DNA of 64,000 nt from Podarcis pityusensis (taxonomy: Eukaryota), in assembly GCA_964106645.2 (NCBI GenBank), contig OZ067039.1; one strand, 5' to 3'. The notes beneath the pieces were generated by a model. It was not told the origin of the DNA. It made no database searches and worked only from the letters and a program-made list of their open reading frames with translations. This document shows positions 1-54,812 of the stretch, in pieces. Each line of letters begins with the position of its first letter. Position 1 is the stretch's first letter. The translations under genes and the position numbers were made by a program.

Positions 1-22
1 AGGTCACAACTTTTTCTCGATA
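1..22 (-). CDS. Opsin exon 4 (start only; helix 8)
   Basis: Strong polypyrimidine acceptor tcttctccctcccttcctttcag|TAT CGA GAA AAA GTT GTG ACC = YREKVVT, completing the NKQ(F/Y)R motif. Confidence 0.8.
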
Positions 23-3000
23 CTGAAAGGAAGGGAGGGAGAAGACACAAGCAGAGCCTTAGATACTGCCACTGCAGCAGTTTTAAAACATAGTCTTGAT
101 TCAGAGCCATGAAGCTACTATATCAGTTCGCCCAACCTAGATAATAATGTGATCATGAAGAGTTCTCCAGGACTGCCCCCTCTCACAGAAGTAGAGAAGA
201 AATACCAGCATTGTTATTATTTTTATATCATCTAAATTGCATTTTATAGCATGTGACTGTATGCAGCTGAACAACTGGCTACAGTTGAGGCTACTTTAAT
301 AAAAGAAAAGCAGGCTTTTGGCAGATATTATCAGTGGGGCAGCTTTAAATCTGGTTCAATGGCAATCTTGCACCTTCTCTACTCTTTCTTAATGTTCTCA
401 CAAGCACATCTTTTAAACCGAATGCTTCATCTTGGCATTGGTCCACTTTTCTAAGGACAGAAATACAATAAACTTCCTTGAAGTTATCCTGCTTCTCGAT
501 GGCAATTTGGCTAGAATGCTACTAATCCAGCCAGGAGGTCAGATAAGCAGCGTTAAAGCAATCTCGATTAGTTTAGTGTTCCTGTGAGCCATTTTTAGCA
601 TTATTCATAAAAGGGGCATGTAAATAAACTTGATTATGATTCTGTTTTAACAGGCTGGACCATCTGAGGCCTACTAGAAATGTATTCACATTTCAAATTT
701 GCAAGTCATGCCATCAGATATTATCTCTGTTCTACAGCTTGGAAGGGGTAGTACCTCTGGTGGGGGACATATTGTTCTCCTTCTGGGGTAGTTTGCACTC
801 CAGGGAAGTCACTTTGGTGCTGCTATCCCTTGCGGGATATCTTCGGGAGAAGAAAAGGCTAAGAAGTACACACTACACAAATCCAGAGTGGAGTCCCAAA
901 GATGGTTGGATGGTGCCTTGTATGCCCTCTTTCCAGCAACTCCTGCGGCCAAGCTGGTGCCAAACGTATTGCTCTGCTTTTCTTTGGACCATGTCAGTGA
1001 GGCCCGGAGGGAGTTCTTGTCATCTGGGCAGCCCAGGACCTCCATACACACTGCTCAGACTTGCACCCTGGGGAGGTCACTGGTGTTGCTAGCGCAGCGG
1101 TTTGGCTTCATCCCTGAAGGCACACTTGGTTGTCTCTTGAGACAGACGGATACCAGCAGCAACAACAACTAGGAAACGCAGGGCGTGAGCTATTAACTGA
1201 CTTGGTGAATATAATCAGTGCCATAATCCAGAACATTTTGCCTTTAAGCCAATCACAACAAGGTCATATTATTCTTCCTAGGTAAACAACAAAGCACACA
1301 TGTTTAATTTGCAACACTGCAAGGTAGATTTACCTGCTTATTCAGACATATGTAAATGACTGGATTGTATACGGTGCCTGTTTTAGCCATATACATAGGG
1401 ATGCTCTGGATTTGGGGACCCATGATGACTTCTGGATTCACCACTCTGGTCAGGGCAAAGGCAGCATAAGGCACCCAGCTGAGAAGAAAGGCCAGGATCA
1501 TAATGACAACCGTCTTGGTCACCTGAGTCTCAGCCCGCTGAGTCGAATTGCTCTGGGCTATGCCACTTTTTGCCACCTAAGAAGAGAGAGGATGAAATGC
1601 AATGTATTACTATAAGACTGGGGGCTGGTAGCAGAAGGAACTGCTGAAATGGTCAGATGAAGATTTAGGCTACGGGGCGATTTCTTCTTTTCATCTTCTG
1701 CGTCTTAAGACTTTGTGGGCTCTTCCAGTGGCTCACAGAAATGAATACGCTGCTTTCTCTGCTTTTTGCAGCAGTTTAAATGCTTCAACTAAAACAACGG
1801 CAGCCATCCATGGATGCAAACGAGTCAAAGAGGAGGGACTCCAGAGACAACAATAAAGAATGGAAAGCGGTGGCAGCTGCTAAACAATGCCTGCGCTAAG
1901 TATTCCCAGCATGCCCTGAAATAATGTGCCTATAAATAGCTGCAAGTCATATTAGTGCAAAGGACATGCCTCCTTCAAATGCCTTAAGGTCAGACAGTTG
2001 TTACTGGAGCCTAAGTATGTATTGTCTCCCCAAGACTGAACGATCGGTTGTTGCTCTTTCTTTCTTTTTCTTTTGCCATTTCACACCCACCCACACATAC
2101 CTTTTCAAGTTAAACATAAGTTGAAACATCATGGAATTTTGCCTAGATTTCTTCAGTGTTGGTCTGATCCTAAAATCTGTGGCTCAGTGGCAGAGTTCCT
2201 GCCTTGCATGCAGAAGGCCCCTGGTTCAATCCCCAGCAGTTCCAGGTAGGGCTAAGAAAGACCCCACTTGAAATCAGTGAGTTGCTGCCATCAGTGTAGA
2301 CAATACTGAGCTAGATGATACCAATGACCTGACTCAGAGTAAAGCAGCTTCCTCTGTTCCTAATCTGATCCAGAGCTCGGATACATAAAGGGACTGCTGT
2401 GCAAGGGGATTCTGTCTCCATTCGTGTCAGTGGAAGACTCAGCTCCAGGCTCACAATTTGTGCCGGATTTACGTATAAGCTAAACAAGCAATAGCTTAGG
2501 GCTCCACTCTCTTGGGGGCCCCCAAAAAAATCAAAAGGAAAAAAGGTGTTTGCATTATTAAGTTTGTTATGAATAATAATCATTTTAAGTTAGAGCTTAA
2601 TAATTATTTCACTATTGATATGGGTAAAGGTAAAGGGACCCCTGACCATTAGGTCCAGTCGTGGCCGACTCTGGGGTTGCGGCGCTCATCTCGCTTTATT
2701 GGCCGAGGGAGCCGGCGTACAGCTTCCGGGTCATGTGGCCAGCATGACTAAGCCGCTTCTGGCGAACCAAAGCAGTGCACAGAAACACCGTTTACCTTCC
2801 CGCCAGAGCGGTACCTATTTATCTACTTGCACTTTGATGTGCTTTCAAACTGCTAGGTTGGCAGGAGCAGGGACCGAGCAACAGGAGCTCACCCCATCAC
2901 GGATATTCGAACCGCCAACCTTCTGATCGGCAAGCCCTAGGCTCCGTGGTTTAGACCACAGCGCCACCCATGTCCCTATTAATATACTATATAATATACT

Positions 3001-6000
3001 ATTAATATACTTCTTCTTAATTGTATTTCAGTATTAATATATTTCTTAATTGTATTTCAGTTCAGCAATTACTTTGATAAAATACATATTTTGTTAGGTG
3101 CAAATGGCTTTAGATACCTATTAGGTCCATAAATTACCATATAGCATATATTCAACACAAAAAACAGCGACAATTTGTTGTTGGCAAAGGACAGCTGGAC
3201 ATATAAAGGGCCCCATTACCTTCAGTAGCTTAGAGCCTCATCAAACCTAAATCCGGCCCTGCTCACAAACCTTTTGCACTCATTGAAATAGCTCTCCATT
3301 TAAATGCATGGAAAGGCTTTGCAAGGTTTTCTCTGTGTGTGTGTACTTTGAAAGGAAGAAGGCTGCCTGGAAAGGAACGCAGCCCTCAGACTGAAAAAAT
3401 GTTCCTCACCCTCCATTTAAAAACTCAGGGCTGGATTAAATTGAGCTGTCCTGCAACGGGAAGCCAGAGCAAGGTCTCCCAATACCATAATGGGACTTCC
3501 CCCACCTCCTCCCCCAAATCCACTCTGGACAGGGAGAACAAGCATAAAAGAAGGGAAGGCTAGATTGTTCCATCTGGGAAGCGGAAATGCTTATACTAAT
3601 GGAACAATCAGAAGACAACCTGTCTATGGAGCCTTCATCCCGATTTGTTAGCACAAAGTTTTTGGGGTGTTAGACAGCACCAGCTACTTACTGAGCCTTC
3701 ATCCCCATTTACTTGCAGGAGGTTAGATGGTATTACGTCAAACAAAAGTCATCCCACTCTTTGCAGTGCATTTTCCCATTGCTTGCCTTATTGCAACCAG
3801 TTTTGGGAGGGAGTGGGTTTGTTGGGCCAGAGCTCCAAATCAACTTTAATTGCGCAACTCGAATTTGCCAGTATGTGACCGAACCTCACTTGAAAGTAGC
3901 AAGGGCCTGCAAGCGTCCTGAGTATGGTACAAAGCAGAAATTCTCTTGTTTTCTTCTAGGCCTCAGGCTACCCAACTGTAGAAATCAGTTGCAAGAACCC
4001 TTTTGGAACATGCATTCCAGACTCTTAGCAGAACTAGTGAATGATTTCCTCTGCTATGTGGAAGCAGGGTGGGTGACTCACCTGTTTGAGGACGACTCAC
4101 CTGTTTGAGGACGTAAATGAGCTTGCCGTAGGACCAGAGGATAAGGGCCAAAGGAAGCAGGAAGCACCACACGAAGAGAGACAAGTGGTAACTGCGGCTG
4201 TTCCAGTCTTCTCTGTGCCAGGCCAGAGCGCAGTTTGAGGCAATGCCTTCCACATCGTAGCTACTCCAACCAAAAAGCGGTGGCAGAGTCCACATGATAC
4301 ACCAGAGCCAGGTAAACAGGAGCGCCAGGAGGGCATGTTTCTTCCCAAACTGGATGCCTTTGAATGGCCTGCAAACCACCAGGTACCTCTCCACAGCACA
4401 CACCACAACAGACCAAAGGGCCACCAGCCCTACAGCGGGAAGAGGAAGGATTAATGCATGCTTGTTCTCAGGGGGGAAAGCTTCTCCAGAACCCTGGCTA
4501 GGATGCTGCCATAATGGTGGCAAAAGAGGAAAGTGGCTGCAGGATGCCTTGCCAACCCTTTTCCCAGCACATTCCCTCACTGGCCGTGTAAGCATCCACT
4601 CAGGTCACATCCACACAGGCTGCTGCAGAGGGAGGGGGCAGCCAGGTACACTTGCCCCCAGTCTCAGAGAGCTAAGCAGGCTAGGGGGGCCTTGCCAGGG
4701 GCCTTCCAGACTCTCAGCCCATGCCTTAGACAAGCTCTGCACAGGCCTGCATCCATGCCATACGTTTAAAGCACATGGCTTGCCCCCAAAGAATCCTGGG
4801 AACAGTAGTTTACCCCTCAGAGAGCTACAGTTTCCAGAACCCTTGACAAACTACAGTTCTCATATTGGGAAGCCACATGCTTTCAGTGGACTTTGTGTGT
4901 GTGGTGTGGGTGTGACCCTGTATAGGAAATTAATGTTTATTTAGGTCAGGTTCTTGCCTCACTGGACTCAGGAAAATTAAGTGTAAGAGGTAATGACTTT
5001 TTCCAAGGCCCTCCTGACTGCTCCACGGGGACCCTTTACTATTATTCTTCTTCTTGTCATTCGTATAGAACTTTCAGGGTTCAAATCACTTCACAAGTAC
5101 TATTTCACTAATATTTCACTTCCTTATAAGGCAGGCTGAGGGGGAAATACCAAGAAAGGGCCTTCCACCACCCTCAGAAGTTGGGGGGGTGTCCTGGGGG
5201 AGGGCATTCTTTGTGGCAACCCCTAAATTGTGGGATTCACTTCCCACAGAGGTGTATCTGGTACCTATACAATACAGCTTTCAGCAAATGCTGAAGATGC
5301 ATTTCTTTACTCCGGCCTTTGACACCTGAGATACATGTTTTCAGGATCCACCCTGTTCCTGCGATTGCACTTTGTTTTAACTGTTTTTAATACCCATCCT
5401 CTGCTGGTTAAGGGCAGGTAATAAAAAACAATAATAGAACTACTACTGATGGTGGTGGTGATGCAGACAAAGGGCCTAGACTGAGGCCGAGAAACAAGTT
5501 GCTTGCTCAAAACCACCTAATAAGCTCACCATGGAGATGAAATGTGGACCCAGCAGTCCGCATGTACCCTATTTTACAGTGGACAGTCCTTTATGCAAAG
5601 GCATCCTCTGTTCAAAGGGCTGTCCAGGACAAGTCCAGTTTAAAGAGACCTTGAAGTTGACCATCAACAGTTAGTCCCCGGACAGCCAAATGAGCAATCA
5701 CACAGGTCACCTGATCAAAGTCGACCCCAATACAGTAAGATGTAATCCTATAAAGTATTGTAATTATTTCTAAATTAGCATATATGCAACTTTTATGCAA
5801 ATCTGTGCTCTCTGTTCTCTTTTCTTGTTGAAACATTTGCTGTTTCTTGGTGATGCTTAAGAAGCAACCCTAACCATACTAAGTATCATGCTTCATAAAC
5901 CTGAATGAGAAAACCACATTAGGTGGTCTTTTCTGGAGTGTCTGTAATGGTTGTAAAGCTAGCAACAGGGATGTGCCTTGGTCTTTCAAATGTCAGCAGC

Positions 6001-7403
6001 GCCCTGTGTAAGGCCAAAATTCACACCTCTCACACCTCTCGCCTTCTATTCTGCATGTGCGCTACGTCATAGTGTGACACCCTGCAGCACAAACACACAC
6101 AGCTCAGCATCCAGTGCAGGGAAACCTGTCATGCTGCCCTAAATCTGCCTCTGCTAGCAGCTTGTCCAGAATGAGAAGAAGGTGTCAAATTCTAGGCCTC
6201 CCCACAAGAGAAACCACAGGAGTTTGAAGAATATGTGGGTGGGTGGGTGGTTTGCTTGCTTGGTTGCTGTTGAATGATCGCTGGGCCTGGGGTTTCCCAC
6301 CCAGTTGGTGGGACTCCCTCCTGTTTTCCATCTCACACCACAGCAAGAGGACATTTTACTTCTGAGCTAGCATTCATCCACATACTAGCAGGCATGTCCA
6401 GGAGGTGGCTGCAGAAAGGAAGGAGATGGGTGCTGTGAGCTTCCCACCTTTTCATCTATGTGATAACTAACTTAAAACTCTCCAGGCAACCATCCAAATT
6501 TTCACTCCAGTGGTAGATGAAGCTTATATATTGAATTCCTTGAAGATTCACAAATATGATTCAGATGTGGGTTTCCAGTTCAGATGCCTTCCCTTAATAT
6601 ATATGTAGTTCAGGTACTGAGTTACATTTTCACTAGACTGTAGTGTCTAGAGCTTAACAAAATGTTTACTTACATACTGAGAATTCCTCAAATTCCACTT
6701 ATATACTGAAAATTCCTCAAATTGGAAATTGGGAAGGTCAACATTAATATATTTTTTTAATCATCTGAAACGTCAAATTGGAACAAGCCCCAAACTGATT
6801 GTCACCATCAATTTATTCAAGGAAAAAACCCCAAGCAATTATTATCTCCATTCTGACTTAATATTTGTTTCTTCGCTATAGTTGTGCTCACATTATCCTA
6901 TGTCTGACAGTGATTCCCCACAGATTTCTATCTGCGTATGCAACATGGGTTGTATAAATGCATGTATAGACTACTATGTATGCAGCAGAACTTCCATTAG
7001 CAATGACACACATAAATCTAGATAGGTGGGTAGGTGGGAATCACTTACCAAACAGAGCAACGGAAAAGCCCTGGAAGATGCAGAAATACTTGTTTTCAAA
7101 GTAATACCCATGCAGATTAGCATCCGTCGTGGGGCAGAGTCCAATCACTAGACTGCCCATGTCTGCAACCGACAAGTTCACCACAGCGTAATTAATAGGA
7201 ACCCTGAGAAATTTGTGCTTGATGGTTAGTAGAATGATGGTTCCGTTGAACCAAATACCCAGAAGCATGCCAAGGATCATAAGCACCCCAAGACCAAACT
7301 TGTATTTCTTTTCCCTGGCCTGATCCAAGCAGGTGATGGCGTTACACGTCACATTGGGTCCAAGGGATGTTGAAGCATTGGAGGAAAACAGAGAATGATT
7401 CAT
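1..7403 (-). CDS. Non-visual ciliary opsin with Gln113 (parapinopsin/parietopsin-like; probable lepidopsin / QB-opsin); 4 exons, 3' end outside window. join complement(<1..22,1334..1576,4101..4429,7049..7403)
   Basis: Spliced ORF of 316 visible codons with 7-TM opsin hallmarks: LRVPINY...NLSVAD, C110-IF-Q113-GF, ERY, PPLFGWSSYDVE181G..C187, WVPY, MAK296TGTVYNPVIY, NKQ|YR. All introns are GT-AG and phase-compatible (1,0,0). Confidence 0.95.
1334..1576 (-). CDS. Opsin exon 3 (ICL3, TM6, TM7 with retinal-binding Lys)
   Basis: Acceptor ttcttag|GTG, VAKSGIAQ...PMYMAKTGTVYNPVIYICLNKQ, donor CAG|gtaaat; 243 nt; Lys codon at 1382-1384. Confidence 0.95.
2178..2362 (+). mobile_element. tRNA-derived SINE (Squam3-like)
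   Basis: A box (tggctcagtgg) and B box (ggttcaatcc) head, body ending cagcttcctctgttccta; related degraded copies near 14620-14835 and 39345-39520. Confidence 0.7.
2458..3261. mobile_element. Non-autonomous hAT-type element with nested Sauria SINE
   Basis: Inverted ends gccggattta / taaatccggccctg; 8-bp flanks ctcacaat (2450-2457) and ctcacaaa (3262-3269). Confidence 0.65.
2623..2976 (-). mobile_element. Sauria SINE
   Basis: Reverse complement of the GGGAC..GGTGGCGCTGTGG head and ACCTTTACC tail; near-identical to the copy at 8795-9151. Confidence 0.9.
4075..4112. repeat. Perfect 19-bp tandem duplication covering the opsin exon-2 donor
   Basis: gactcacctgtttgaggac twice (4075-4093, 4094-4112). 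Confidence 0.97.
4101..4429 (-). CDS. Opsin exon 2 (TM3 to TM5)
   Basis: Acceptor ctgtag|GG, LVALWSVVVCAVERY...YGKLIYVLKQ, donor CAG|gtgagt; 329 nt. Confidence 0.95.
7049..7403 (-). CDS. Opsin exon 1 (N-terminus, TM1 to TM3)
   Basis: MNHSLFSSNAS...YFCIFQGFSVALFG; donor G|gtaagt at 7048. Start ATG chosen by opsin length and N-glycosylation sequons (NHS, NAS, NVT); upstream in-frame ATGs exist. Confidence 0.92.
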
Positions 7404-8794
7404 CTTTCCATTTTGTTTGCAAGAAGTGATCCCTGTTGATCCCTGTGCAAAGGATAATTCTCCTATTATGTCTCTCACAAAAGACACTCTCTGAAAGATG
7501 CAATAATACATTATCCCTTTTGGGTTTGAATCCATTCTTGTTTTTACGCATGGGGAATGGATATATAGCATGTTTGAAAGCCCTGGGCCCAAACTATTAG
7601 AAAAACACATCTCTTGGAAACCACTGAATTGTGTATCTGTTGTGCCTCTCTGCAGTGTAGCACTAATCTTTAGTGCTTGTTGTCATTTCAGGTCTAGATA
7701 AATGATAAATAATTGTGAGTTGCTTTGAAGCCCATGAGAATGGTGGTTATGCAGTCTGCTCTAGGTCTGGGAAATGGGTAGGAGAACCTATTTATGTCTG
7801 TCATCTTTTTCTCCAGAATACCAGCTCTTGCTTTGAAAGAACATAAACCTCTTGTTAATATGCTATGCTTTGGAAATGATGGTGACAGACAAACAACCCT
7901 GAAATATAGATGTTAAGATCATATGTAACTAAACACAAATATATGACACTCTGGATAGTAGCAGTGCTGGGAAGTATGAACTGAGTCTTTCATCTCCACT
8001 CTGCCACCAGAGTCCCATTCACAGGAATGGCACTGGGGGGGGTGTCATTGGGCACTTGCCCCTGAAGCAGGCCCATTGCCATTCTCTGCAGCCCCCTGCT
8101 GCTCCAACCCCTTGCCATTGCTGCCTGCTCACCTGCCCTCTGAGCATGCAATAAATGACAAGGGTGAGGCGATGGAGCAGCAACTCCCTCTGGGCAATTG
8201 TGCAGATTGTAGCCGGAAGAAGAGTGGGCAGGAGGAGGACATGGCAGAGGAGGACAATCCCACCAAGGACCCCTTGGCTCAGGGGCTCCTCAAAACCTAA
8301 GAGTTGAAACAACCCATGGATCAGTATCTTTTAAGCATCTGAAGAAATGCTCTCTGCTTTTAATAAATAGAGGTCTTCCGGTGTTACATTTCTGAAAGTG
8401 TGTTAATAGCCAGCTTGGGTGCAGAAGCTAATAGCAGGTGAAAAATTGGGCATCCTAAGAATCTCAGATCATGCAGTCCATTTCACCAGGCTGCAGAACA
8501 GAAGGCAAAGCAGGGAAGGTGGCCTATCCAGCCAGCTCTGCTGAGAAACCAGCTGCCTTTGATGGATAGTCAATTGTCACTTAGCAGCAGCCTTTCATTC
8601 ACTCTGACTGAACACTTCCATCCCAGCTGCTCGTTATTAGACCTATAACTTTGGTGCTTGAGATTGCTTCCCCCCGCCCCCATCTTCCTTCCTCATCCCT
8701 TATTCCTGTTGCTACATGCCTTTTAGATTGTAATCTTGAGAGCAGGAATTGTCTGGTGTGTGTGTTTTTTAATTGATCAGTAAGCTGCACTGGG

Positions 8795-9151
8795 GGGACG
8801 CGGGTGGTGCTGTGGGTTAAACCACAGAGCCTAGGACTTGCCGATCAGAAGGTTGGCAGTTCGAATACCTGCCACGCAATGGGGTGAGCTCCTGTTCCTC
8901 AGTCCCTGCTCCTGCCAACCTAGCAGTTCGAAAGCACGTCAAAGTACAAGTAGATAAATAGGTACCGCTCCGGTGGGAAGGTAAACGGCATTTCCATGTG
9001 CTGCTCTGGTTTGCCAGAAGCGGCTTAGTCATGCTGGCCACATGACCCGGAAGCTGTACACCAGCTCCCTCGGCCAATAAAGCGAGATGAGCGCCGCAAC
9101 CCCAGAGTCGGCCACGACTAGACCTAATGGTCAGGGGTTCCTTTACCTTTT
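8795..9151 (+). mobile_element. Sauria SINE
   Basis: gggacgcgggtgg...cctttaccttt; target-site duplication taagctgcactggg / taagctgcattggg. Confidence 0.92.
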
Positions 9152-9548: not shown

Positions 9549-9579
9549 TTTATTAGCATTTCAAAAAGAAATTTTTATT
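9549..9579 (-). terminator. Candidate TNNC1 polyadenylation signals (two AATAAA)
   Basis: tttatt at 9549-9554 and 9574-9579 on the plus strand, about 350-380 nt after the stop codon. Confidence 0.6.
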
Positions 9580-43300: not shown

Positions 43301-46300
43301 TGACACTTCTAGACTGCCATCCGAAGCACATTTACTAGAGAAGCAGTCTTCAGCGGGACTTGCTTCTGAGTAAACTTGCTTAGGATTATTCTGTTAAAAC
43401 AAGAGTAAGCTACCGCATCCCACTGTAATAATTTGTTCTCACTTCTGAGCAAACACAGAATTGGGCTGTTAGCCTTATTTCATACCATAACCAAGGATCA
43501 TTTCACATGAATGTATGGCTACGATTACTATAAAAACATTGACAGCTAAAAATATTTCCATTTGTCTTCTGATTTTAACAATTATTGTTCTCTTGAGTGC
43601 TTGAGGTTATATATAGAAGAGAGCTGCAAAGAAATATATATAATACCCAGTCCAGTTAGCCTTGTTCAGTACATTAATTACTTCCCTGAGCGCACTCTCC
43701 ACTCACAGTCCTCCTGGGAGTCCAGCTGGCCAGTCATGGGACAGTTGCGGGGGGGGGGGGGGCAGTGATGGAAAACTCCAAACATGGGCTCACATATGCA
43801 ATAGGGAAAAGGATGAATGCAATGGACAAATGGATGCCTCCCTAATTTTCATCTGAATGACACAAAATTATTTAAATGACTTCAAATCTGAAACAATCTG
43901 AACTGCAGTCCAAGCCTTTCACACATTTCAGCAGCCCAGTTATTTCGTTGGAAACTCAGCTCCATTGAGATCATTTGCTTCCGTCAAGCATAAATGCAGC
44001 AGCCTGGGTGGGAAGTAATAAGATTCCAAGCTTCTGATGAACCTGTGTATTCAGTAATTATTGTTAAATTATCAGTATGTCAAATAGGTATGTTAGTTGA
44101 TGGATGTGCATTTCTCTTAAGTAATCTCAAGCACAGGATGACATTGTATAAATGTATGCTTGAAATACAATGCATTTTCTTTCTCAGAGCATGTGAAAGT
44201 TAATACTATTTAGTATATTTCAAATCACATTTGCTTGTTTTTACATCAGTGGTGTTCAAGAACTGTTTTTTTTATCTGTTCTAGAAATAACTTTTAGAAA
44301 AACAGTCCTAGCCAGCAGTTTCTCATCAAGTAGTTCGACTCCTACAAGCCATACAGTTACTCAAAGATGCTCTGAAACACCCGGCCTGGGAAGCAGAAAT
44401 CAGGTAATGGCTCATTTTCTGAGATAGTTTTTGTCATAAACCAGCAAAGTCTGTAGCCCACTCAAACCTGAATGCCATGTCTGAGAAAAGTGGAGTAAGA
44501 TTTCAGCAAGATGGCTGACTGGAAACATATTTCAAATAGCTGTCCATATGTTAGATAATCTTTNNNNNNNNNNNNNNNNNNNNNNNNNNNNNNNNNNNNN
44601 NNNNNNNNNNNNNNNNNNNNNNNNNNNNNNNNNNNNNNNNNNNNNNNNNNNNNNNNNNNNNNNNNNNNNNNNNNNNNNNNNNNNNNNNNNNNNNNNNGAA
44701 ACTATACCATGGCTACTTTAAAAAAGCAAACATTTTTTTCTTTTCCTGAGGTTTGCTTGTAAACTTCTGATACAAGGAAATCTGATGTATTCACTGAATG
44801 TCTTCTACCTATAGCAAGGGTGGGGAACTATATCTGCTTGGTGGGCCGGAACCTATCTTCTCTCAACTTCCCTCATAGGCACAGTTAAGTAGGTAGCCAA
44901 TGCACCCAGTTGTCAGTATCCTGGCATCACAATGACTGCAGGTTCCTATGTGGATGATCAGCTAATCATCAGGACTTGCAAAGAGCTACCTGTTGATTTG
45001 CCATGTTGCACTAAAGAACAACAAAGCCTATACATGCCATTCTGCTTTAAAGGGGGAAAGCACCATTCAGAGCAATCACTAGCTACTCCAGATAGCCAAG
45101 TGATGCTTATTAAAGTCATTTTAAAGTTAAACAGGTTATCTAGGGTTGCCATATTTCAAGAAGTGAAAATCCGGACACAAACAAATTGACATTAAAAAAA
45201 AATAATGCCAAAGAACTTGACACATTCCCTTTTCGGTGGCGGGGGGACAACACAAAAAACCATTGAAATCCCAGTAATGTCTGGGATAATCAGAACGTAT
45301 GGCAACCATATTATAGCCCACAGTTCAGCTAGTTATTGAGCCATATTAACCTTTTGAACTATGTTAAGGTTGTTATGTGACTAGGCCCACCTTTTACTAG
45401 ATTATCGTGTCTCCTTTTGTATGTTTGTTTCTTCACTTTAATATTTTTTCCTGCTCTTAAAGCAGTCAATGATTCAGGCTTACAATCTTAAAAACACAAA
45501 AAGAAAAGTGATTGGAAGGGAGGAGCAAAGAGACCCCACTTCTTAGTTACAAAGTTCTTGTAAGTGTTCTTTCCAGCAAGCACTGGCAAAGCAAGATCCC
45601 TGCAGCTGCATGCAATGCATGGGGACCGACTGATCTTCCTCTTGTCCATTACTCTCTACTTGGGAGTCAGTAGGAGCAGCCTCCCAGCGGCCCTTAGTCC
45701 CCTGGCCGATGGCAAACGCAAGAATGTACTGCCCTTCAGTTGTGCAGTACCAGGGGCAAACTTGACAGATGCATCAGAGTGTGACTTATTTATTCTGATT
45801 CCCTTCTCTTTCAAGGTACCTGCTTCTCAGTTGGACTCTTCCAACAAATATGAAAATGCCCATCACATGTGGTGAGAGTGATGTTTCATTTTGATTTCCA
45901 CTTCTACCTCTTGAACATTTGCATGCATTCAAAACTTGTAGCTGCTAGAGATCACTGTAAAGAGAGGAGAAATAAAGTTGTGAAGACTTAAGGGGGTTCA
46001 TCTGCCTGGGAGCTCCCTGTACTTCCTGTTTAAAGCAGAAGTGTGAAACAGGAAGTACAGGAAGCAGCTCCACAAAATGCAGATGGGGCAAGTTGAGGTC
46101 AGGATGGACTCTGTACACACTCGAAATGGTTTGTAAGGACCAGCTGAATGAATGCATACCTGCATAAGTTCAGCAACCGTCTACTTTTATCTCAAATGCC
46201 ATTGCCTCATTACATATAATAATAATTATCAATAATAATACATGTATTTTAAATATTTTAGTAATGAAGAGACACCAGAGTGAGACTTGGAAATAGGATG

Positions 46301-52300: not shown

Positions 52301-54812
52301 GAGAGATCTGGCAGCTTGTACTTTCCCAAGTTCTTGCATGCAGTTGTACCCTTCCTTTTCCTGAGAGTAGCCTGAGTGCAGTGGCCTTGGAGAAGAAAGA
52401 GCTGTTGGATGCTCCTCAGTAAGTATGGGGTGACTTCAGATTGACACAAATCGTTTAGCCAGGGGATTGAACTCTTGGCATGCCTACTTTGACAAAGCTT
52501 TCCTTCTTTTCGCAATACAGTTTTAATCTGTCCCTAATTTGACTTGGAAATCCAGACAATTGCAGCATGAAAATCTGAATTTTGAAAATCCAGTGTGAAT
52601 AGTATTCAAACTATTTAGCTCTTCACTGTAAAATCCGGTTCAGAACTCAACCTCCTGCCACATCTTAAGCCATTTGTCCTGTTGGTTACATCATCCCTGT
52701 CTTATAGTAAATCAGAATTCAGCTGGGAATCCTTTGGGCAATGCAGTCAGTGACGCTGAAATCAGTATGGAAGTTCAGCCTAAACAGATGTATTCATTAA
52801 GCACTGATTGTCAATCTTTTCCTTTACCTGAATGAAAATAGAGTTAAAAAGAACAGATACGGGTGTGTTAATGTTAAACTACAAAAGGGCATTCCACCCA
52901 TCAGTACATCATGTACATAAAATTACCTCTAATGTGAGTCACTGAGAGAATGGGGGGGGGGGGGGGTTTAGCAAAATATAAGCTCATGGTGAAGAACATT
53001 TCTAGCAATCCTGTTCTAAGGATTTAGGAAAATAAATTGTGATTGGGTAGAGTCTGGCGGGTTAGAAAAGGGAAGATGCAAAAGCAGATGGAAATGAATA
53101 GCCTTAATTGTCTGAGTTTTCTTTTTCTTTTTGCTGATCTAAACACTGTACCCATTTAGATTTTCCTCTTTCTCCGTCCCTGCCATGCAAAAAGCCCAAC
53201 TTATTACATATACAAAATTAACAGGATGGAAGGATTCCAGTCTTCTGACGCAGTACTTTTCTATGTGCAAGAAGCTTTCCCCCACCTGCTGGCTGAAGTA
53301 GTACAATCCCGTGACTCCTGCACCATGTGATTTCTTTGCATGTGTAGAGAGGGTATGAATAGTGTTTCTGGCAATGCTAAACAAGTATAGAACTTAACTG
53401 AAAAGCACAAAAAATACTGGGGTAGAGGGGAGCATCTGGGATTATGCTGACAACTGTATTTTTAGCACTCTTCCGCACCCCCTCCTGAGTAAATTCCAAG
53501 AATGAAAGAGGAAGTTGAAAAGTTAGGCCAACAAAAATGTTTACCATCAGCAGTTAACTTCTTTTAAAAAGTGTTATATATAATTTATTGATACTTAGCA
53601 TGAGCTTAGTTTGTCTGACTAGGCCTGGGAAAATTGTAAATCAGATCCCCACTCAGCCATGAAGCTCACACTGGGTGGCCTTCGACCAGTTGCTACCTTT
53701 CAGTCTGACCTCACAGACTTGCTGTGAGGGTACAGTGAGCAAGGGAATAACCATGTATACTACCCTAAGCATCTTGGAGAAAGGGGCAGGGACTAAACTG
53801 CAATCTTAAAAGGCATGTAATTTAGTATGTTCAAAGTGCTTCCCATACATTATTTCAATGTTCCTTAAAATAGTACTGGCCTGCTTGATGTGATTACCAT
53901 CATATTACATGTGGGGGACTGAGGCTGAGAGGGAATGACTTGCCTAAGACATCTAATGAATGCATGGCAGAGGTGAGATTTGAATCAGTGACTTCTAGTT
54001 CACTGGTGCCTATTTTAATATTTACCAGAGTATCCACATCACTCCAAGTTTCAGTTTGAAAGCCTGTTGTTAATATTACAGATAAAAACATTCTGTGTGA
54101 CTTTTAGCCTAACTTTTTAGTTGCTTCCTTGGTAGAATTATTTTAATAAGTGCAGACTATAAATTGTGTATTTCTGCTTACAGGGAAAATGGAGAATTAT
54201 GAACTGATTCATTCTAGTAGAGTGAAGTTCATATATCCCAATGAAGAAGAAATTGGGGACCTTGCCTTTCTAGTAGCAGAGAAGATGAACTGTGTGATTA
54301 ACTTCCAGTCTCTGAATATACTTCTCTATGTGCTAGCGTTTCAAGTGAATGCTACAGAAGGGACTGCTCAATCCAACAGCTCACTTCAACCTAAAACGCT
54401 GATCTTAACCAGCTCGGATATGTTTCTTTTCAATGAGGATTACATCAGTTATCCACTTCCTGAATTTGCTAAAGAACCGCCAAAGAAAGACAAGTATCAA
54501 CTTGCAGATGGAAGAAGGATCCGGGATTTAGACAGAGTGCTCATGGGATATCAGACGTATCCGCAGGCGCTCACGTTTGTTTTTGATGACATTCAGAATC
54601 AAGATCTCATGCAGAACCTGACCCTTGATCACTTTGACAATGTTCTCAGTTTTCCTAAAGGGCAGGTCACCCAGGAAGGCAGCAGCAGTCGAGAGGTCCT
54701 GTGGTGTGTCTTTATCCCAAGTCCAGAAAGCCGCGAGAAACTAATATCTCTCCTTGCTAGGCAGTGGGAGATCTTATGTGGTCGAGAGCTACCTTTGGAG
54801 CTCACTGGGTAG
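22262..54812 (+). CDS. NISCH: Nischarin (PX domain, leucine-rich repeats, C-terminal region); 21 exons, 4257 nt, 1418 aa
   Basis: All 21 exons are AG/GT bounded and phase-consistent; recognisable motifs [38 protein letters not shown], LRRs, [49 protein letters not shown]. Confidence 0.97.
24306..24552. mobile_element. Tc1/mariner MITE with a different internal sequence
   Basis: TA-cagtggtacctc...aggtatgactg-TA; internal tgcgcatgcg palindromes. Confidence 0.8.
28600..29280 (+). mobile_element. Degraded L1/Tx1-type LINE ORF2 3' fragment (approximate bounds)
   Basis: 28906-29106 reads WEDDL...WDQIW...[27 protein letters not shown], resembling the Cys-rich C-terminal domain of L1-clade ORF2. 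Confidence 0.65.
29768..29851 (+). CDS. NISCH: NISCH exon 2 (PX)
   Basis: [28 protein letters not shown]. Confidence 0.96.
30290..30340. repeat. (GAAGA/GAAAA)n microsatellite
   Basis: Read directly from sequence. Confidence 0.9.
31402..31584 (+). CDS. NISCH: NISCH exon 3 (PX)
   Basis: [22 protein letters not shown]...FLHFHLY. Confidence 0.96.
32727..32775 (+). CDS. NISCH: NISCH exon 4
   Basis: [16 protein letters not shown](G). Confidence 0.94.
33744..33907 (+). CDS. NISCH: NISCH exon 5
   Basis: [10 protein letters not shown]...[16 protein letters not shown]. Confidence 0.96.
34804..35162 (+). mobile_element. Sauria SINE (CpG-rich, young, different subfamily)
   Basis: gggacgcgggtggcgctgtggg...acctttacctttacc; perfect target-site duplication tgccatgactt. 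Confidence 0.92.
35688..35783 (+). CDS. NISCH: NISCH exon 6
   Basis: [32 protein letters not shown]. Confidence 0.95.
36645..36740 (+). CDS. NISCH: NISCH exon 7
   Basis: [32 protein letters not shown]. Confidence 0.92.
37129..37281 (+). CDS. NISCH: NISCH exon 8
   Basis: [17 protein letters not shown]...[15 protein letters not shown]. Confidence 0.96.
37702..37770 (+). CDS. NISCH: NISCH exon 9 (LRR)
   Basis: [23 protein letters not shown]. Confidence 0.95.
38080..38265 (+). CDS. NISCH: NISCH exon 10 (LRR)
   Basis: [15 protein letters not shown]...[13 protein letters not shown]. Confidence 0.96.
39080..39208 (+). CDS. NISCH: NISCH exon 11
   Basis: [43 protein letters not shown]. Confidence 0.96.
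39720..39833 (+). CDS. NISCH: NISCH exon 12
   Basis: [26 protein letters not shown]...DKK. Confidence 0.96.
40150..40400 (+). mobile_element. Degraded L2 LINE fragment
   Basis: LDY..G....LVQNA.A.L...H.T.VL.ELH.. pattern typical of the L2 ORF2 C-terminus. Confidence 0.6.
41611..41719 (+). CDS. NISCH: NISCH exon 13
   Basis: [36 protein letters not shown]; strong acceptor. Confidence 0.9.
42080..42476 (+). mobile_element. Sauria SINE
   Basis: Same head and body, (cctta)n tail. Confidence 0.88.
44285..44403 (+). CDS. NISCH: NISCH exon 14
   Basis: (E)[30 protein letters not shown]...RNQ; phase 1 to 0 fits neighbours. Confidence 0.8.
44564..44697. other. Assembly gap (134 N) in NISCH intron 14
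   Basis: Run of N. Confidence 1.
45141..45310. mobile_element. hAT-like MITE
   Basis: tagggttgccata...tatggcaaccata inverted ends. Confidence 0.6.
45816..45871 (+). CDS. NISCH: NISCH exon 15
   Basis: [18 protein letters not shown](C); needed to bridge phase 0 to 2; poorly conserved. Confidence 0.7.
46348..47661 (+). CDS. NISCH: NISCH exon 16 (large, 1314 nt)
   Basis: 438-aa ORF with [16 protein letters not shown] and [25 protein letters not shown]; donor AG|gtgagg. Confidence 0.96.
48679..48853 (+). CDS. NISCH: NISCH exon 17
   Basis: [28 protein letters not shown]...FHSSIAE. Confidence 0.93.
49768..49921 (+). CDS. NISCH: NISCH exon 18
   Basis: [17 protein letters not shown]...[13 protein letters not shown]. 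Confidence 0.96.
50510..50731. mobile_element. Tc1/mariner (Tigger-like) MITE
   Basis: Same family as 15611-15852. Confidence 0.9.
50954..51082 (+). CDS. NISCH: NISCH exon 19
   Basis: (D)[10 protein letters not shown]...[21 protein letters not shown](G). Confidence 0.94.
51633..51794 (+). CDS. NISCH: NISCH exon 20
   Basis: [18 protein letters not shown]...[20 protein letters not shown]. Confidence 0.96.
54184..54812 (+). CDS. NISCH: NISCH exon 21 (last coding)
   Basis: [15 protein letters not shown]...[13 protein letters not shown]. Confidence 0.97.

Follow-up and report, generated by a model that had tools for sequence, protein, structure and literature searches.

A probable lepidopsin (OPNLEP) orthologue downstream of TNNC1 in Podarcis pityusensis

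RESULTS

A four-exon opsin gene on the minus strand

The stretch of DNA analysed here, which we call the window, comprises 64,000 nucleotides of contig OZ067039.1 in the genome assembly of Podarcis pityusensis (GCA_964106645.2). Read directly, its minus strand carries a four-exon opsin gene whose ATG lies about 2.5 kb downstream of the stop codon of TNNC1, the gene for slow skeletal/cardiac troponin C. The original prediction, made from the letters of this DNA, was of an intact non-visual opsin that might be the recently proposed lepidopsin, and our results largely point the same way. The gene as such is not new. Its family, locus, structure and presence in lacertids were all published in 2025, when it was named lepidopsin (OPNLEP) by Romero and de Souza (PMC12043008) and Q113-bistable (QB) opsin by Gyoja et al. 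(PMC11893379), and the lacertids, three Podarcis species among them, had by then been covered. The exons in the window, with the transmembrane helices (TM) and key residues that they encode, are as follows.

7403 to 7049, minus strand: exon 1; ATG at 7403, donor GTAAGT at 7048; ends on the first base of the Gly121 codon; N-terminus, TM1, TM2 and start of TM3, with N55, D83, C110 and Q113
4429 to 4101, minus strand: exon 2; acceptor AG at 4431-4430, donor GTGAGT at 4100; TM3 to TM5, with ERY, E181, N186 and C187
1576 to 1334, minus strand: exon 3; acceptor AG at 1578-1577, donor GTAAAT at 1333; loop 3, TM6 and TM7, with E247, W265, P267, K296 and NPVIY
22 to 1, minus strand: start of exon 4; acceptor AG at 24-23 behind a long pyrimidine tract; YREKVVT, the start of helix 8, after which the exon leaves the window

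All three introns are of the GT-AG type, in phases 1, 0 and 0, no stop codon interrupts the exons, and each opsin exon has a Pfam 7tm_1 match. Alignment to bovine rhodopsin chains from the PDB assigned N55, D83, C110, Q113, E134-R135-Y136, E181, N186 and C187 and, in exon 3, E247, W265, P267, K296 and N302-P303-Y306, the positions being checked by script. This agrees with the DNA and with the earlier claim of an open, spliced frame carrying Lys296, ERY, NPVIY and C110/C187, and the residues expected of an OPNLEP/QB opsin (Q113, E181, K296 and the C110-C187 pair) are present. The frame is open for 316 of about 381 codons, or about 83% of a protein whose expected length is 376 to 385 residues. 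Since only 7 codons of exon 4 precede the edge of the window, the word "intact" holds for exons 1 to 3 and these 7 codons, and as a statement about the whole gene it did not stand. In P. lilfordi (locus L001, 14272-14490) and P. muralis (locus L002, 18088-18306), exon 4 consists of 72 intact codons and a stop, and the remainder of the exon in P. pityusensis is presumably intact as well. In these two lacertids, the tail encoded by exon 4 contains an R-V-A-P-E motif some 28 residues short of the C-terminal end. This internal motif resembles the VxPx with which rhodopsin ends, as though the tail had grown longer, and the iguanid sequences in the supplement of the OPNLEP paper likewise have RIAP or RVAP.

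Two other candidates for exon 4, open frames behind an AG at 1181-1100 and 1168-1050, do not have the helix-8 motif. They were rejected because they match only a mis-spliced UniRef model, while the start at position 22 fits all curated orthologues. An ATG upstream of the opsin start (7511-7509, minus strand; MYYCIF...) was rejected as well. It shares the opsin frame in the window and P. muralis, lies in another frame in P. lilfordi and is missing from Sceloporus, and neither the ATG nor the frame is kept across P. lilfordi, Sceloporus and Lerista. Given this lack of conservation, MNHS... is the likely start of the protein. The 418-residue P. muralis model at NCBI begins at the upstream ATG, and the 37 residues thereby added at the N-terminus are probably an annotation artefact.

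Orthology and synteny

The exons were compared one at a time. When exon 2 was searched against 1.84 billion sequences, each representing one 50%-identity cluster, a single match had an E below 1e-30, namely the mis-spliced UniRef model of P. muralis, which is 99% identical in this exon. With that model as the query, we gathered orthologues from Zootoca (XP_034960868.1), Lacerta agilis, P. muralis (XP_028573285) and P. lilfordi (a partial model) and, further afield, from Sceloporus, Phrynosoma, Lerista, Varanus and Anolis, most of which carry the name "parapinopsin-like" at NCBI. These lizard proteins are 63 to 86% identical to the query, and any other opsin reaches at most 41%. The deposited P. 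lilfordi protein (218 residues) is without exon 1. The window exons line up in order and gap-free with the Zootoca RefSeq protein (residues 1-118, 120-228, 229-309 and 310-316), and they match the P. muralis OPNLEP sequence that Romero and de Souza curated for their supplement (PMC12043008). Identity amounts to 110 to 113 of 118 residues with the lacertid orthologues in exon 1, 109 of 109 with the P. muralis model in exon 2, and 81 of 81 with both P. muralis and P. lilfordi in exon 3.

For the phylogeny (IQ-TREE), the three window exons were entered as separate rows together with 7 OPNLEP sequences, 9 parapinopsins, 5 parietopsins, 5 VA opsins, 3 pinopsins, 2 rhodopsins and, as outgroups, 4 OPN3/TMT opsins. 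Each of the three exons fell inside the lepidosaur OPNLEP clade (support 100/100) and, within it, among the lacertids (95/92). OPNLEP was sister to parapinopsin with moderate support (93/85), and its stem was long, at 1.66 changes per column. The parapinopsin clade itself (99/99) comprised gar, sturgeon, teleosts, frogs, tuatara and lizards, including the parapinopsin of P. muralis, and since OPNLEP lies outside this gar-to-lizard clade, the split between the two predates the divergence of bony vertebrates on this tree. Parietopsins formed a separate clade (100/99). OPNLEP thus stood apart from both groups, and from pinopsins, VA opsins and visual opsins, as expected of the separate old subfamily that had been proposed, and the expectation that the gene is no typical parapinopsin was likewise borne out, with Q113 in place of an acidic residue and a position outside the parapinopsin clade. 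The TM3 motif also differs from the QGFAVNYFG of parietopsin, as had been pointed out.

P. muralis has a true parapinopsin (P0299) of its own, on the same chromosome as OPNLEP and 5.9 Mb from it, with introns at the same three positions. The exon breaks after ...FG, ...(K/R)Q and ...NKQ match both this parapinopsin and Lacerta OPNLEP. From the tree and from this second locus it follows that the gene neither nests within parapinopsin or parietopsin nor is the only such copy.

Two neighbouring genes place the opsin on the chromosome.

About 18742 to 9933, minus strand: TNNC1 (slow skeletal/cardiac troponin C), six coding exons; stop codon at 9935-9933
54150 to 54809, plus strand: NISCH exon encoding the C-terminal PH domain (PF25625, E 7.9e-61)

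TNNC1 was located with a looser EF-hand regular expression, the strict version having given nothing, and its exon 5 had a better PDB match to slow skeletal/cardiac troponin C (85 bits) than to the fast skeletal form (61 bits). With six exons on the opsin strand and troponin C matches in the PDB, the placement of the opsin directly downstream of TNNC1 was corroborated, and NISCH, the other neighbour that had been named, lies head-to-head with TNNC1. The poly(A) signals of TNNC1, at 9579 and 9554, leave about 2.1 kb between its end and the opsin ATG. TNNC1 precedes the opsin on the same strand in P. muralis, Lacerta, Sceloporus and Lerista (loci L002 to L005) as it does in the window, so that the synteny of the TNNC1 3' flank, proposed as a check, is the same throughout this set. 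In P. lilfordi (L001) and Lerista (L005), the opsin is followed by RPL29, encoded on the opposite strand, and by analogy with these RPL29 is expected beyond the edge of the window. Of the position between TNNC1 and RPL29, the TNNC1 side is therefore seen in the window and the RPL29 side in these two species, and a position 3' of TNNC1 is that of the published OPNLEP locus (PMC12043008, PMC11893379). Deposited models of Phrynocephalus forsythii (562 residues) and Varanus komodoensis (502 residues) fuse TNNC1 with the opsin; in view of the short gap between the two genes, these fusions are most likely the result of over-merging by gene predictors.

Divergence and constraint

Over 9.3 kb, the window and P. 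lilfordi chromosome OX395127.1 are 99.1% identical, leaving aside an insertion of 4.9 kb in intron 1 of P. lilfordi (L001 4166-9098) that the window lacks. Identity to P. muralis is 93 to 96% at the DNA level. The window thus represents a Podarcis that is near to the P. lilfordi assembly and yet distinct from it. The coding sequence in the window differs from that of P. muralis by 8 synonymous and 7 nonsynonymous changes, corresponding to a ratio of nonsynonymous to synonymous differences per site (pN/pS) of 0.26, and the divergence is 1.6% in exons and 4 to 7% in introns. The low ratio and the lower divergence of the exons show that the opsin is under constraint, that is, under purifying selection. 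Two residues are private to the window.

7086 to 7088, minus strand: Y108, private to the window, two residues before C110
7149 to 7151, minus strand: L87, private to the window

The other OPNLEP proteins compared have I87 without exception and S108 in all but one. Neither I87L nor S108Y is an obvious loss-of-function change, and they may be real substitutions or assembly errors.

Exon-2 donor, upstream block and transcript contigs

Two further features may bear on how the gene is expressed.

4110 to 4073, minus strand: 19-nt tandem duplication copying the exon-2 donor; first GT at 4100-4099, second GT at 4081-4080; positions -10 to +7 identical
7404 to 7522, minus strand: conserved block of about 120 bp before the ATG, from an alignment of the window, two Podarcis, Lacerta, Sceloporus and Lerista

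The donor duplication is shared by three Podarcis genomes, those of the window, P. lilfordi and P. muralis (20 nt in the last of these), and is missing from Lacerta agilis, Sceloporus and Lerista. Splicing at the second donor would add 19 nt, shift the frame and lead to a stop 15 codons into exon 3. The block before the ATG is kept from lacertids to an iguanian (Sceloporus) and a skink (Lerista). It holds an AT-rich CATAATAGG element and a GAATTA/GGATTA homeobox-like site and is a candidate for the core promoter and 5' untranslated region. A 13-bp deletion in it is common to the window and P. lilfordi, and a 10-bp tandem duplication, with ACAGGGATCA twice at 7427-7446 (24 to 43 nt before the ATG), is found in the window only.

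Logan contigs of four public runs were placed on positions 1301-7300. Three of the runs (X1, X2 and X6), whose contigs lie in introns and extend across the donor, resemble low-coverage DNA or unspliced material. Run X5, from a related organism, yielded a 260-nt contig that matches 1334-1570, ends exactly at the exon-3 donor and has unmatched ends, and a 274-nt contig that matches 4098-4350 with 21 unmatched letters. The latter match runs three bases past the exon-2 donor, which still fits splicing at 4101, since GTG is the start of exon 3 as well as of intron 2. Contigs cannot prove splicing, but those of X5 suggest a spliced transcript in which the in-frame exon-2 donor was used.

Repeats and other features of the window

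2626 to 2976, plus strand: interspersed repeat of about 350 bp in opsin intron 2; inverted copy at 8795 to 9150, minus strand, upstream of the opsin
2173 to 2244, plus strand: tRNA-like element (Rfam tRNA, 31 bits)

The two arms of the repeat are 93% complementary and flank exons 1 and 2 of the opsin, their contig depth is very high in all runs, and further copies lie in the P. lilfordi and P. muralis loci. Given the tRNA-like element nearby, they are probably copies of a short interspersed nuclear element. Nine other large open frames of the window had no Pfam match, and a run of N (an assembly gap) occupies 44564-44697.

DISCUSSION

We find that the opsin gene downstream of TNNC1 in P. pityusensis is, with a probability of roughly 90%, the Podarcis orthologue of lepidopsin, alias QB opsin, at its conserved position 3' of TNNC1. 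The identity that had been suggested is upheld by membership of the OPNLEP clade with full support, by the locus, by the combination of Q113 with E181 and by the four-exon layout. Lepidopsin is the sixth and last-found subfamily of the vertebrate non-visual opsins that are related to visual pigments; it predates the split between ray-finned and lobe-finned fishes and survives in lizards and tuatara only. The window adds an intact-looking lacertid copy and an independent confirmation of the published locus structure, and leaves the knowledge of the family unchanged.

Several observations weigh against the assignment of the window copy to a functional lepidopsin. About 65 codons of exon 4 lie outside the window, where a lesion is possible for this genome, and both I87L and S108Y affect positions that are otherwise conserved in the clade. 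Exon 1 differs from that of P. lilfordi at four sites, all of them nonsynonymous and none synonymous, counts that are too small to interpret. The duplicated donor could send some of the opsin transcripts out of frame, none of the public runs for the stretch is on record as RNA, and another X5 contig extends 33 nt into intron 1. The spectral and signalling properties discussed below, finally, are extrapolated from one Anolis protein that is about 65% identical to the Podarcis sequence.

Three alternatives were considered. The first, which we regard as unlikely, is that both exon-2 donors are used, so that part of the lepidopsin pre-mRNA becomes 19 nt out of frame and is stopped in exon 3. If true, this would mean a dampening or a regulated unproductive splicing of a third-eye opsin in the Podarcis lineage, or a first step towards its loss. 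Very unlikely, in our view, is that the window holds a young pseudogene or decaying copy, either broken in the unseen part of exon 4, or silenced, or subject to mis-splicing at the duplicated donor. Such a state would accommodate the cut exon 4, the two private residues, the four-to-zero count in exon 1, the twin donor, the indels in the conserved block before the ATG and the many losses of OPNLEP among vertebrates (PMC12043008), but it is difficult to reconcile with 316 codons free of stops and frameshifts, splice sites that are all canonical, a pN/pS of 0.26 and exons that have diverged three to four times less than introns from P. muralis. Exon 4 is moreover intact in two other Podarcis genomes, the twin donor is common to species whose genes are otherwise intact, the X5 contig fits the first, in-frame donor, and lacertids have a parietal eye and retain the gene (PMC12043008). 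That the gene is a lineage-specific, fast-evolving duplicate of parapinopsin or parietopsin and no separate old subfamily is highly improbable: the "parapinopsin-like" label of its orthologues, the moderate support and long stem of its sister placement, the four exons and chromosome that it has in common with parapinopsin and the Q113 that it has in common with parietopsin are outweighed by its position outside a parapinopsin clade that spans gar to lizards and by the exon remnants that both papers describe from the TNNC1-RPL29 interval of coelacanth, gar, bowfin, sturgeon, turtles and alligator (PMC12043008, PMC11893379).

As a lepidopsin, the product would be a seven-helix, retinal-binding G-protein-coupled receptor in which K296 is predicted to form the Schiff base. 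Of the two known counterion positions, 113 and 181, the former is occupied by a neutral Gln and only the latter by an acidic residue, E181, and the retention of E181 along with Q113 in OPNLEP is described in both papers (PMC12043008, PMC11893379). When the Anolis carolinensis protein was expressed, an ultraviolet (UV) pigment of about 370 nm was converted by UV light to a form absorbing at about 470 nm and reverted by yellow light (PMC11893379). By orthology with that protein, the Podarcis pigment is predicted to be UV-absorbing (about 370 nm) and bistable, UV light converting it to a stable state that absorbs visible light (about 470 nm) and longer wavelengths returning it. Lepidopsin is also a candidate for an optogenetic tool that can be switched between UV and visible light.

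A further residue of note is N186 (motif IASNC; codon 4233-4235, minus strand), a clade signature carried by 8 of the 9 OPNLEP proteins compared. The residue here is S in parapinopsin, parietopsin, pinopsin and rhodopsin, and T in VA opsin. Since S186 of rhodopsin takes part in the hydrogen-bond network of E181, N186 may by analogy matter for the counterion arrangement of Q113 and E181. The main text of Gyoja et al. (PMC11893379) makes no mention of position 186, and in Romero and de Souza (PMC12043008) the string "186" occurs twice.

The presence of OPNLEP tracks that of the parietal eye (PMC12043008), and a 2026 review still gives no site of expression (PMC13094114). Expression in the parietal eye or the pineal is what we infer here, as is done in the literature. 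For this question the window offers three handles, namely the exact exon borders, the block of about 120 bp kept from skink to iguanian and the twin donor specific to Podarcis.

Compared with published OPNLEP, the gene in the window has the same locus 3' of TNNC1, four coding exons with the same breaks, the same start (MNHSLFSSNAS), Q113, E181 and K296, a helix 8 beginning with YRE/DK, an identity of 97 to 100% per exon to the lacertid orthologues and a fully supported place in the clade. It differs in its species, which is neither P. muralis nor that of the P. lilfordi assembly, in the private I87L and S108Y, in the 10-bp duplication before the ATG and in that its exon 4 is cut by the window. 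Parapinopsin, as represented by P. muralis P0299, lamprey and teleost PP1, resembles it as the sister clade, in chromosome, in the three intron positions and in the loop-3 motif VAKxGxAQ, and UV-sensitive, bistable photochemistry has been reported for parapinopsin and OPNLEP alike. In contrast to the window gene with Q113 and N186, parapinopsin has E113 and S186; it is also shorter (about 345 versus about 381 residues), at most 41% identical to the P. muralis OPNLEP model and encoded at another locus. Parietopsin (OPNPT) shares Q113 with a retained E181 and four exons and, like OPNLEP, has been lost in the same lineages without a parietal eye. Its gene in P. muralis is on a different chromosome, chromosome 10, according to the table of the published paper. 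It carries the motif CMFQGFAVNYFG where the window opsin has CIFQGFSVALFG. Parietopsin is a green-sensitive (about 522 nm), Go-coupled pigment.

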